Assembly (NCBI RefSeq): GCF_000006765.1
Contig: NC_002516.2
DNA length: 64,000 bases
Origin: Pseudomonas aeruginosa PAO1
GTDB taxonomy: Bacteria > Pseudomonadota > Gammaproteobacteria > Pseudomonadales > Pseudomonadaceae
Direction: 5' to 3' (one strand)
This document shows, in pieces, positions 36,172-39,371 of the stretch. Under the pieces are notes generated by a model. That model saw nothing but the letters and a program-made list of their open reading frames with translations. It made no database searches and was not told the origin of the DNA. The position numbers and the translations under genes are program-made. Positions within the stretch are counted from its first letter, which is position 1. The number at the start of each line of letters is the position of its first letter.

Positions 36172-37500
36172 ATGCCTTCCTCACAGCTTCCGGGGGCTTC
36201 GCCCTCGGAGATCGATCTCGTTCAGCTGTTCCAGCAATTGTGGGCGTCGAAATGGCTGATAGCGCTGATCGCGGCCTTGGCGACCGCCGCTGCGCTCGCC
36301 TACGCGCTGTTGGCTGTTCCAACCTACCAGGTGGATGTCCTGTTGCGGCCAATCCAGACCAAGGCCCTGGAGGCTGTCAATGTCAACGGGCTGTATGCCC
36401 TGACTCCGCGGGAAGCGCTGGATCGCGTCGGCAACGAGCTGGCAGCCTACTCCGGCAGGCTGGAGTATTTCGAAGCCCATCCAGAGCTATTCCAGCAATT
36501 GAACGCCGAGGGCTTGTCCCCCGAGCAGGCTTTCTGGAAGTTCAACCAGGATGCCTTCAGCATGCAGCAGGCGGACTTGAAGAAGGACCCCCAGGCGGCG
36601 CCTTTCTTCCGCTTGTCCATGCAGTATCCCCAGGGCATGGATGGTGCCGCCATTCTCAACGGCATGCTCGCGTCGACCATCGAGAACGAGCGTCAGCGAA
36701 TCCTGGACGACCTCCAGGCGCGTATCGACGGTCGCCTGCAATTCCTCGAGCAGGATATCGAAGGCAAGCGTGCCAGTTACCAGGCTACCAAGGAGGGCAA
36801 GATCGCCCGGTTGCTGGAAGCGGACAGCATCCGGCGGGCCGGCCTGGAGGATGAGCTCAAGGCGTTGCGCGGGCGGCTGAAGATGGTGCGCGATTCGCGT
36901 ATCCAGCAGCTCAACGAGGCTATCCAGATCGCCACCCGGCTGGGGATCGTCAAGCCGACGACCCCGGGCGCACTGGGAGAGGTCGGGCAGGATGGCTCGC
37001 GCAGCGTTTTCCGCACCGAGGTGAATAACCAGCAGATACCCCTGTATTTCATGGGTGTCGATGCCTTGACCGCCGAGCGCGATACCTTGCTCAAACGCAA
37101 GGGCGATGACTTCACCGAGCCCCGCGTGGCGAAGATCCAGCAGGAGCTGAAGCAGCTGGAGAACAACCGTGAAGTGCAATACCTGCAGGCTCGAAAGGGC
37201 GAGGAGCGTTTCTTCGAAAACATCGACAAGCTGCGTGGAGAGCAGGCGCGCCTCAAGACTCTGAAGGCGAGCGAGCTGAAGATCGAACTGGTGCGGATCG
37301 ACCAGAAGGCTTCGACCCCTCTGAAACCGATCAAGCCGCGCAAGGCCTTGGTGGTGGCCTTGGGCCTCCTGGGCGGGTTGGTGTTCGGCGTGCTGGTGGC
37401 TCTGGTTCGGGCGATGTTGCGTACCCCTCGGCAACGGGTACAGGAAGATAGCCTGCCGCCGGGAGTCGTCAGCCTCGACCGGAGCCTTTCAGGGACCTGA
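36172..37500 (+). CDS. wzz2: O-antigen chain-length regulator Wzz2 (very long chains)
   Basis: EIDLVQLFQQLW N-terminus, coiled coil, PIKPRKALVVALG..GG C-terminal TM. Confidence 0.9.
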   Translation: MPSSQLPGASPSEIDLVQLFQQLWASKWLIALIAALATAAALAYALLAVPTYQVDVLLRPIQTKALEAVNVNGLYALTPREALDRVGNELAAYSGRLEYFEAHPELFQQLNAEGLSPEQAFWKFNQDAFSMQQADLKKDPQAAPFFRLSMQYPQGMDGAAILNGMLASTIENERQRILDDLQARIDGRLQFLEQDIEGKRASYQATKEGKIARLLEADSIRRAGLEDELKALRGRLKMVRDSRIQQLNEAIQIATRLGIVKPTTPGALGEVGQDGSRSVFRTEVNNQQIPLYFMGVDALTAERDTLLKRKGDDFTEPRVAKIQQELKQLENNREVQYLQARKGEERFFENIDKLRGEQARLKTLKASELKIELVRIDQKASTPLKPIKPRKALVVALGLLGGLVFGVLVALVRAMLRTPRQRVQEDSLPPGVVSLDRSLSGT

Positions 37501-37509
37501 GATCAAAGG

Positions 37510-37536
37510 TGCGCCCCCGAAGTACGCGGGGGCGCA
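37510..37536. terminator. Hairpin between convergent wzz2 and a small ORF
   Basis: TGCGCCCCCG/CGGGGGCGCA 10-bp stem, weak U tails. Confidence 0.6.
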
Positions 37537-37540
37537 TGGT

Positions 37541-37732
37541 TCAGGCCGATTCACCTATCTGCCGCAGTTCTTCTTCTTTCTCCAGCTTGATCCGATAGGC
37601 GTGGGCGTCATCCTCGTTATGGAAGACGCCAACCAGCAGTCCCTGCTGATGCACGTCCCAGCAGCGGCGGCCAAGCGCACGCAGCTCGCGGGATTTGTGG
37701 TCATCGTCACGCTCGGTCACTGTCACACTCAT
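37541..37732 (-). CDS. 63-aa small protein of unknown function
   Basis: ATG with GGAG 7-8 nt upstream, non-overlapping, ends at the hairpin. Confidence 0.65.
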   Translation of the reverse strand: MSVTVTERDDDHKSRELRALGRRCWDVHQQGLLVGVFHNEDDAHAYRIKLEKEEELRQIGESA

Positions 37733-37824: not shown

Positions 37825-38151
37825 TCAGTTTCCAAGGTGTGAAGATGGCATGCCGGATGCTCTGGAACAGGCCTCTTCCCTCAGGCGTATGCGGCCGAAC
37901 AAGGCCGCTTCCGTGAGGGCGGTAATCGCCAACAGGCGATCCAGGCGCAGCAGCAGAGTCGCTCCTTCGACGGCCACCTCAAGGTATTCCTCCTTGCCGC
38001 CGCCTGGCCGAACGGCCCGGGTATGCGTCGTGCGCGCCTCGGCTTCGAAGCGAACACCGTCCTCGAGTTCGAGGAGCAACCGGTAGCGGTAGAGGCAGGC
38101 GATCTCCAGGTAGTCATGGAGATCGCAGGCGATCGGGCGGTAGCTGTCCAT
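37825..38151 (-). CDS. Rof/YaeO-like Rho-binding antiterminator
   Basis: YRPIACDLHDYLEIAC..LELEDG..KEEYL..LRLDRL resembles Rof. Confidence 0.8.
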   Translation of the reverse strand: MDSYRPIACDLHDYLEIACLYRYRLLLELEDGVRFEAEARTTHTRAVRPGGGKEEYLEVAVEGATLLLRLDRLLAITALTEAALFGRIRLREEACSRASGMPSSHLGN

Positions 38152-38156
38152 TGGCC

Positions 38157-38411
38157 TCAACAGCCTTCCAGGGGAAGGATGTAATGGCCATGGAGCCGAA
38201 TGGCTTCGGCAACCTCTGCTGTCGCAATCTCGCTGTGGCAGTAGCTGCAATGCCCCTGGCTGATATCGGCCTCGTCTATGCCTCTTCCGGCGAGCCAGCG
38301 TCGAGCGAACTCGCCGGCGCGAGCCCCCAGCTCCTCCGTGACCAGGACATCGAAGTGCAGGTAGCGGCCGTCGCGGGTTCGCACATGGGTGTCGAAGATC
38401 TTCACCTCCAT
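38157..38411 (-). CDS. DUF2024 family protein
   Basis: IFDTHVRTRDGRYLHFDVLV ... CSYCHSE. Confidence 0.82.
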   Translation of the reverse strand: MEVKIFDTHVRTRDGRYLHFDVLVTEELGARAGEFARRWLAGRGIDEADISQGHCSYCHSEIATAEVAEAIRLHGHYILPLEGC

Positions 38412-38422
38412 GGCCGTTCTCC

Positions 38423-38656
38423 TTATTTCAGATCGCTGAGCGCCGCACCGAAGTTAAGGTGCAGTACCTGTCCGTCGACAACCAGGGCAGGAACCGACTT
38501 GACCCCGGCCTTTTCCGCCTCGGCGATGCGTGCCGATTGTTCGGCGAGATGGACCACTTCGATGTCCACCTGCTTGCGATCGAGCAATGGCAGCAAGGAA
38601 CGTTCGGCTTCGACACAGATTGCGCAGCCGGCGTGGTAGTAGATGGCTTTGGTCAT
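38423..38656 (-). CDS. Small thioredoxin/glutaredoxin-like protein
   Basis: YHAGCAIC (CxxC), GVKSVPALV (cis-Pro motif). Confidence 0.88.
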   Translation of the reverse strand: MTKAIYYHAGCAICVEAERSLLPLLDRKQVDIEVVHLAEQSARIAEAEKAGVKSVPALVVDGQVLHLNFGAALSDLK

Positions 38657-38677
38657 GCTGATTCTCCTGTGGGAAGT

Positions 38678-38752
38678 TAGTATCGATACGATACGTTTTC
38701 AGCCTAAACAAGGCGCGACCTCTTTGTCAAACATGTTTTTAGTCGATACTAT
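38678..38752. promoter_or_regulatory. Twin operator-like sites and sigma70 promoter between the divergent thioredoxin operon and MarR gene
   Basis: TAGTATCGATACGA (38678-91) and TTTAGTCGATACTA (38738-51) approximate the palindrome TAGTATCGATACTA; TTGTCA-17-TACTAT (38724-52). Confidence 0.7.
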
Positions 38753-38771
38753 ATTGGCAAGGAGGTATCCC

Positions 38772-39332
38772 ATGTCCGCCATCGCCCTTTACGATTATCT
38801 GGAAAGGCTGACCAGCCTGATGCGTGCCTGGTCCCGCGAGCAGCCGCTGGTGGCTGAGCTGCAGCCGGTGCAGTTGAGCGCCTTGCATTACCTGGCGCGT
38901 TGTAATCGCTATTCGGATACTCCGCTGGGCGTGACCGAATACCTCGGCTTGACCAAGGGCACAGTGTCGCAATCGCTCAAGGTGCTGGAAGGGCGGGGGC
39001 TGATCAGCAAGCTGCCGGATGCGCGGGATCGGCGCAGCGTTCATCTGCGGCTGACCGATGCGGGGCGCGCGCTGATCGAGGCGGTGATTCCGCCGCAGTT
39101 CCTCGAGCAGGCCGTCACGGCACTGGGCGAGAAGGGCGAACACTTGCAAGGCTTGTTGCGTGATCTTCTGGTCGTCATCCAGCGTCAGGAGGATGTGCCT
39201 GGTTTCGGCCTTTGTCGGTCCTGCCGGTTCCATCAACGGCGTGCGGGTTCGCCCTTCTGCGGTCTAACCGGGGAGCCGTTGAGCGATGCCGATGCCGAAC
39301 TGATCTGCCGCGAGCACCAGGCCTGCGGCTGA
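38772..39332 (+). CDS. MarR-family regulator with Cys-rich C-terminal extension
   Basis: LTKGTVSQSLKVLEGRGLI..DRRSVHLRLT; C-x2-C-x11-C-x15-C-x2-H. Confidence 0.9.
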   Translation: MSAIALYDYLERLTSLMRAWSREQPLVAELQPVQLSALHYLARCNRYSDTPLGVTEYLGLTKGTVSQSLKVLEGRGLISKLPDARDRRSVHLRLTDAGRALIEAVIPPQFLEQAVTALGEKGEHLQGLLRDLLVVIQRQEDVPGFGLCRSCRFHQRRAGSPFCGLTGEPLSDADAELICREHQACG

Positions 39333-39341
39333 TCCGCGGGC

Positions 39342-39371
39342 AATAAAAAACCGGGCAATGGCCCGGCTTTT
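39342..39371. terminator. Bidirectional terminator
   Basis: A6-CCGGGC-AATG-GCCCGG-CTTTT. Confidence 0.8.

Follow-up and report, generated by a model that had tools for sequence, protein, structure and literature searches.

This study describes a divergent unit of four genes in a 64,000-nt stretch of DNA (the window; all coordinates are positions in the whole window, and + and − denote its strands), in which the gene of a MarR-family regulator with a Cys-rich tail, termed MarR-4Cys, faces three genes encoding a thioredoxin-fold (Trx-like) protein, a DUF2024 protein and a Rof homologue. The gene order, operators, promoters, invariant Cys residues, neighbourhoods and single-target character of the regulator presented below were obtained by sequence analysis and comparison among genomes, and they indicate that MarR-4Cys is very probably a dedicated autorepressor of the trx-DUF2024-rof operon that works through two operators. 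The genes and control features of the unit are as follows.

38772..39332, +, MarR-family regulator and putative repressor with a C-terminal four-Cys domain (MarR-4Cys); 186 amino acids (aa)
39189..39329, +, C-terminal domain of MarR-4Cys, residues 140-186, with C148, C151, C163 and C179; from alignments
38423..38656, −, Trx-like protein; 77 aa, CxxC motif CAIC, PF13192
38157..38411, −, DUF2024 protein; 84 aa, C-x2-C-H motif (CSYCH) and a C-terminal Cys, PF09630
37825..38151, −, Rof homologue, candidate Rho inhibitor; 108 aa, PF07073
38680..38694, no strand, predicted operator O1; 15-bp palindrome GTATCGA-N-TCGATAC, with one mismatch in the window
38735..38749, no strand, predicted operator O2; GTTTTTAGTCGATAC, a degenerate site that is a 4/7 match in its left half and invariant in its right
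38724..38752, +, predicted marR promoter, TTGTCA-17-TACTAT; from a consensus scan
38701..38730, −, predicted trx-DUF2024-rof promoter, TTGACA (38730-38725)-18-TAGGCT (38706-38701)

Gene order and control region of the unit

All four family assignments exceed their Pfam cut-offs and bear out the genes proposed in an earlier first-pass annotation of this DNA, namely a MarR gene facing Trx-like, DUF2024 and Rof-like genes. The MarR protein scored 43.5 bits against PF12802 (cut-off 27; E=3.6e-11), 35.3 against PF13463 (cut-off 22.2) and 28.3 against PF01047 (cut-off 24.6), while the Trx-like protein reached 31.3 bits against PF13192 (cut-off 24.8), the DUF2024 protein 106.6 bits against PF09630 (cut-off 27; E=6e-31) and Rof 91 bits against PF07073 (cut-off 27.6) over the full model length, 1-80. 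In the NCBIfam scan nothing among the module proteins passed the NCBIfam cut-offs, and the Trx-like protein stayed below the MTH895/ArsE subfamily model TIGR00412 (27.7 bits vs a cut-off of 62). The DUF2024 protein also matched PDB 2HFQ at E=4e-19, which is itself a protein of unknown function. The CAIC and CSYCH motifs of the Trx-like and DUF2024 proteins, as well as the Cys/His tail of MarR (C148-x2-C151-x11-C163-x15-C179-x2-H182), are present just as the annotation had written them.

The start of marR was placed at ATG 38772, which has an AGGAGG ribosome-binding site 7 nt upstream and agrees with the starts of the orthologues; in the list of open reading frames (ORFs) the gene begins earlier, at 38643. 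The intergenic region, 38657-38771, thus has the 115 bp that the annotation had given it. On the other strand, only 5 nt separate the DUF2024 stop from the rof start, which fits co-transcription.

The module was compared across 151 Pseudomonadaceae genomes, of which 29, belonging to four genera, carry a MarR orthologue; the loci were fetched with 1.5-kb flanks and read by simple ORF rules, and as the genomes are related, the counts below are non-independent. The MarR orthologues in the 28 other genomes share 63-72% identity. Among the 29 loci, the Trx-like gene was a neighbour in 29, rof in 28, DUF2024 in 15, a MOSC gene in 1 and cytochrome P460 in 0, and the trx-like gene was divergent from marR in every locus. 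The CxxC motif is invariant in the 29 Trx-like orthologues, as CAIC in the window and CP[VI]C in relatives. Conservation of the operator pair, of both promoters and of gene order throughout the four genera upholds the proposed architecture of an autoregulated MarR facing Trx-DUF2024-Rof. Three loci of one genus (L016, at 404-1141, −; L017; L019) have an additional 245-aa protein between the Trx-like gene and DUF2024, with an N-terminal signal peptide apparent by eye, no Pfam family and a weak Excalibur match (E=0.026).

Concerning the operators, the aligned orthologous intergenic regions contain a conserved unit that can be written as the 7-1-7 palindrome GTATCGA-[A/T]-TCGATAC. Of the 28 orthologous module loci (L002-L029; the window's own species excluded), 25 had O1 without a mismatch; its half-site bases are all near-invariant and its flanks variable, and loci with a stand-alone Rof lacked the palindrome. 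In O2, the left half is T-rich and the right half does not vary. Of 30 Pseudomonadaceae intergenic regions, 28 have O1 and O2 spaced by 54-55 bp. The first-pass annotation had described two copies of a near-palindrome, TAGTATCGATACTA, one on the marR −10 and the other just upstream of the trx-like gene. Two sites do lie where it placed them (O2 and O1, respectively), but their register and definition were wrong. A search allowing up to 3 mismatches returned one copy only of this 14-mer, at 38678-38691, and the second element, at 38740-38751, is short by 2 nt and is no copy of TAGTATCGATACTA; the 14-mer was rejected as the operator unit.

The marR promoter TTGTCA-17-TACTAT, which the same annotation had pointed out, was recovered by the scan and is kept in 29 orthologous loci; the scan found one site vs 0.6 expected by chance, which alone is not significant. 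O2 begins 5 nt past the −35 hexamer of this promoter and overlaps its −10. The −35 of the minus-strand promoter shares 5 bp with the marR −35, and O1 lies 6 nt downstream of the predicted minus-strand −10. This layout, with TTGACA, 16-18 nt, [T/C]A-N3-T, 6-8 nt and then O1, is kept in 26 of the 30 intergenic regions. These data describe two predicted back-to-back promoters with overlapping −35 boxes and a predicted operator over each.

A genome-wide scan for the operator, proposed together with the first-pass annotation, found O1 in the nearest complete genome and no other site with up to 1 mismatch to the palindrome; two sites with 2 mismatches are both inside long ORFs. As O1 is the sole close match there, the regulator appears to act locally, and with no further operator site in the nearest genome we rejected the idea of a wider regulon there. 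Among distant relatives, 20 of the 37 loci scanned have the palindrome (up to 2 mismatches) upstream of the regulator gene, often as two full or near-full sites 44-64 bp apart.

The MarR-4Cys subfamily and its neighbourhoods

The full-length AlphaFold2 (AF2) model of MarR-4Cys has a pLDDT of 94.7, with a tail that is confidently folded and packed on the core. The core matched the structures of MepR, MarR, SlyA and CouR (Foldseek, E ~1e-7, 135-148 columns); the search with this model returned MarR proteins only, and the tail was unmatched. The closest named relatives are Pseudomonas proteins, and we assign the source organism to the P. aeruginosa lineage of this genus. C148, C151, C163 and C179 are invariant in 47 representatives with 34-67% identity and in 41 tail sequences, and S48, G63, S66, L72 and R88, in the DNA-reading region with its recognition helix, are likewise invariant in the 47 representatives. 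The two His noted in the tail are variable, and Cys185 is specific to the window's species. Searched against 1.84 billion representatives, the regulator matched 97 clusters (at 50% identity) with E<1e-30 and 576 with E<1e-10, mostly at full length. Judged from these sequences, MarR-4Cys is a broad, undescribed subfamily defined by its Cys-rich tail and not a local oddity. Five proteins of about 340 aa (P0122, P0127, P0128, P0132 and P0152) consist of two tandem MarR-4Cys units and are possibly single-chain "dimers".

The tail matched no Pfam model in a scan of the 47 family members, apart from a weak similarity to the double-zinc-ribbon family DZR_2 (E=0.046), and a search of the Atlas with the tail returned only unnamed clusters with scores below 0.9. 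The AF2 model of the tail alone was moderate (pLDDT 70.7). By these comparisons the tail is a small domain without an existing model that carries a four-Cys site. A Zn-thiolate or an Fe-S site is the likeliest identity of the four-Cys centre, which has a somewhat better than even chance of being the sensor itself. A different explanation would make the tail a structural Zn module only, with a small organic ligand in the MarR pocket as the effector and Rof under metabolite control. Many MarR proteins are ligand-gated, and both the DZR_2 similarity and the confident packing of the tail on the core would suit this explanation. However, the conserved partners are all redox, haem or Mo stress enzymes, with no catabolic pathway among them, and variation affects the neighbouring His but none of the four Cys, so that a purely structural tail with an organic effector seems improbable to us.

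With OhrR, MexR, OspR and MarR, the regulator shares a winged-helix dimer, a palindromic operator on promoters, autoregulation, a divergent target and, likely, a Cys trigger. Unlike these proteins, which have 1-2 Cys in the core, MarR-4Cys has a separate C-terminal domain of about 45 residues with the pattern C-x2-C-x10-13-C-x13-17-C. A functional analogy is possible with NsrR, IscR, RsrR and FNR/SoxR, in which a Cys-ligated cluster senses NO (nitric oxide) or redox state and frees nitrosative-stress genes. Nevertheless, MarR-4Cys is unrelated to the Rrf2, FNR and SoxR proteins by sequence and fold (no match to the NsrR/IscR, FNR or SoxR families in the Pfam and NCBIfam scans or the fold search), and a Zn(Cys)4 site is as possible as a cluster.

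The neighbours of the subfamily outside Pseudomonadaceae were counted in 38 loci drawn from a phylum-level sample (regulator in 19 of 401 genomes) and a class-level sample (21 of 401), using Pfam-validated seeds and a systematic pass with hidden Markov models. The following numbers of loci have the given gene within 1.5 kb of MarR-4Cys.

Cytochrome P460, 14/38 loci
MOSC/YiiM, 7/38 loci
DUF2024, 7/38 loci
AhpC/redoxin, 5/38 loci
Trx-like, 4/38 loci
Rof, 0/38 loci

When the search started from DUF2024 instead, 8 of the 13 loci had MarR-4Cys and 6 had P460. The named carriers of MarR-4Cys include methanotroph symbionts. At two loci, the matches are possibly decaying copies, with an in-frame TAA in the MarR-4Cys match of L074 (G158) and an in-frame TAG in the DUF2024 match of L122 (G894). 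Within Pseudomonadaceae, L025 has a MOSC gene directly downstream of marR in the same module with Trx-like, DUF2024 and Rof, and joins the Pseudomonas-type and MOSC-type contexts.

Cytochrome P460 oxidises hydroxylamine (NH2OH) (PMC10411619), and YiiM reduces N-hydroxylated bases (PMC3831636); N-O chemistry is common to the P460 and MOSC/YiiM neighbours. We found no paper linking a MarR protein to P460. Based on the presence of the same regulator and operator at P460, MOSC/YiiM and peroxiredoxin genes, the likeliest candidates for the signal are hydroxylamine, NO, a related N-oxide or a thiol-reactive species. The first-pass annotation had assumed a thiol or metal stress signal; its Cys-based switch is retained, but the P460, MOSC/YiiM and AhpC neighbours point more specifically to a signal of the hydroxylamine/NO type. 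By analogy with these loci, a signal of this type is a tentative proposal, somewhat less probable than an even chance.

A competing signal, in the sense of the first-pass annotation, is a generic thiol-oxidative or electrophile stress, under which the four Cys would form disulfides or lose Zn with hypochlorous acid, H2O2, diamide or soft metals. It would involve no specific N-oxide link; the Trx-like protein would reset the sensor and Rof would buffer transcription in oxidative stress. A CxxC Trx-fold protein, the most tightly linked partner (29/29 loci), is typical of thiol-switch feedback loops, and AhpC/redoxin and, at some MarR-4Cys loci, CMD genes occur as neighbours. The lack of P460 in the nearest genome also agrees with a generic switch, and E. 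coli Rof was reported to be protective against oxidative stress (PMC12360218). Against it, the commonest neighbours across the family, P460 and MOSC/YiiM, act on N-O compounds and not on peroxides or hypochlorous acid. We regard the generic switch as rather unlikely.

Rof, its genomic site and its possible action on Rho

The assignment of the last conserved gene to Rof is supported by structure comparison, in which three structures of the E. coli protein (8W8D, 8PTM, 1SG5) were matched at E=3e-9. No other PF07073 gene is present in the nearest genome. Like the E. coli and Salmonella Rof (YaeO; 8W8D, 8PTM; PMC11018626, PMC11018607), the window Rof keeps P-[IL]-x-C-D-x-x-D-x-L-E-[IL]-A-C, the E. 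coli helix-1 contacts C10, D11, D14 and E17 being retained as C9, D10, D13 and E16. On the side of Rho, the surface that Rof would contact is conserved, with 12 of the 14 Rof-contact residues retained in the Rho of the nearest genome. The Cys of Rof are Cys9, Cys19 and one more in its C-terminal extension, which is peculiar to the species. The two that the first-pass annotation had seen are present and correspond in the alignment to C10 and C20 of the E. coli protein, but they are family-wide and not specific to the module; of the broader statement that every protein of the unit carries Cys motifs, the motifs are real and the Rof part counts little.

The window Rof differs from E. coli Rof in having His for Tyr13, Ala for Asn9, a longer beta3-beta4 loop and an 18-aa C-terminal extension. 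The Ala mutant of Y13 loses function in E. coli, and His occupies this position in all module-type Rofs. Against the NCBIfam equivalog NF008636, the protein scored 41.2 bits, with a cut-off of 117; it is, as far as the sequence indicates, a family member and not an equivalog of the enterobacterial Rof. A complex prediction for Rof 1-95 with the Rho N-terminal domain 1-130 scored 0.00, which is no answer and evidence neither way.

Some genera also retain a second Rof. Two other genera have both a module-type Rof with CDLHD and a second Rof beside DUF3108/purN with CDLYD, and at the second loci (L035-L049, L057 and L058), where the motif is CDLYD as in E. coli, neither MarR nor the operator is nearby. 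The module-type protein could alternatively be read as no Rho inhibitor but an Sm-like protein that acts with a different partner and was recruited to a detoxification operon. The His in place of Tyr13, the altered beta3-beta4 loop, the score under the equivalog cut-off and the more E. coli-like second Rof of those genera would all be in line with such a reading. On the other hand, the module-type Rof is the only Rof in the window's genus, single-copy Rofs of another genus also have the His, the helix-1 C, D, D and E are invariant, and the Rho contact surface is conserved. Weighing these points, we consider a non-inhibitory Rof unlikely, and from its retained sequence features this Rof probably inhibits Rho.

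The genomic context of rof differs among lineages. The E. coli rof overlaps yaeP and the Vibrio rof has no conserved neighbours, whereas the window rof is the last conserved gene of an operon with a dedicated repressor, as predicted here. The unit is followed by DUF3108, purN and purM, and the module occupies the DUF3108 site, which fits the arrival of a MarR-Trx-DUF2024 cassette upstream of a resident rof. The Rof tree, with few columns and many open forks, did not show a single origin of the module-type Rofs. On the other side, a Wzz/GNVR chain-length-determinant gene (36172-37500, +) lies directly upstream of the unit. The unit presumably corresponds to PA0939-PA0942, with flanks in the PA0938-PA0945 order (wzz2, purN, purM) of PAO1. 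The remaining features at the borders of the unit are as follows.

37541..37732, −, short ORF of 63 aa that separates rof from the terminator hairpin; possible last operon gene (uncertain)
37510..37536, −, terminator-like hairpin, at which the minus-strand unit would stop; 10-bp stem with 9 GC pairs
39351..39366, +, terminator-like hairpin 3' of marR; from a hairpin scan

The 63-aa ORF had no family match in the Pfam and NCBIfam scans and matched only "hypothetical" clusters in the Atlas, and of the fetched loci none but that of the nearest genome contains it. It could be a final operon gene peculiar to the species, or no gene at all.

Proposed regulation and its significance

For repression, the cofactor, the signal and Rof-Rho binding, we infer the following course of events. 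A MarR-4Cys dimer would bind both 15-bp operators in the 115-bp gap, with O1 covering the predicted start site of the trx-like/DUF2024/rof operon and O2 covering the −10 and the spacer in the promoter of marR itself. As the two promoters are back to back with overlapping −35 hexamers, the repressor would hold both divergent units off. A chemical signal acting on the four-Cys centre would release the repressor, and three proteins would then be made. One is the CxxC thioredoxin-fold protein, which would likely serve in thiol repair and in resetting the sensor, and another is the Cys/His protein DUF2024. Rof, by homology, would bind the N-terminal primary RNA-binding site of Rho and hold the hexamer open, lowering Rho-dependent termination genome-wide for the duration of the stress. 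With a CxxC reductase among the genes under the sensor's control, which could return that sensor to its reduced state and so end the response, the module resembles the RsrA-SigR-thioredoxin and OxyR-Grx feedback loops, although MarR-4Cys belongs to a different sensor class.

Taken as a whole, the composite reading of a metal- or thiol-based repressor that senses hydroxylamine/NO-type stress and controls Rof in Pseudomonas is plausible, with a chance just short of even. Several points weigh against it. In the window, O2 is a half-site only, and the promoters and start sites are predictions. The model of the tail alone had no match among solved folds (best Z 2.3) and a known metal-binding fold was not found, and the four-Cys tail could be purely structural. 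The hydroxylamine/NO link is guilt by association from other taxa, and no cytochrome P460 was found in the nearest genome, so that the signal may have changed in Pseudomonas. The substitutions at Tyr13 and Asn9 and the equivalog score of Rof, given above, count in the same direction. In the literature, PA0939-PA0942 were met only as rows of differential-expression tables, and guessed PA14 tags likewise.

In other Proteobacteria, P460 and YiiM/MOSC genes stand under the same regulator subfamily and operator, together with Trx-like and DUF2024 genes, whereas the Pseudomonas module is without P460 and MOSC genes and has Rof at the distal position of the operon. It is conceivable, though doubtful, that MarR-4Cys constitutes an unrecognised family of hydroxylamine/NO sensors that, with a metal-thiolate or Fe-S C-terminal domain and the conserved operator GTATCGA-N-TCGATAC, governs P460, YiiM-type MOSC, DUF2024 and Trx-like genes throughout Proteobacteria and that captured Rof in Pseudomonadaceae.

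Previous work noted that it is yet to be established which stresses lead Rof to silence Rho, and that rof is without conserved regulatory context outside Enterobacteriaceae (PMC11018626). The window rof is tied to a dedicated repressor, a defined operator and a candidate sensing domain, which makes the question of what turns Rof on testable in Pseudomonas. Beyond this genus, clusters with P460, MOSC and DUF2024 in many Gammaproteobacteria, methanotroph relatives among them, appear to be under the unrecognised control of MarR-4Cys and its operator, and DUF2024 gains its first functional context. If the proposed regulation is true, nitrosative or hydroxylamine stress would directly lower Rho-dependent termination, and the module would represent the first defined pathway from a signal to Rof.

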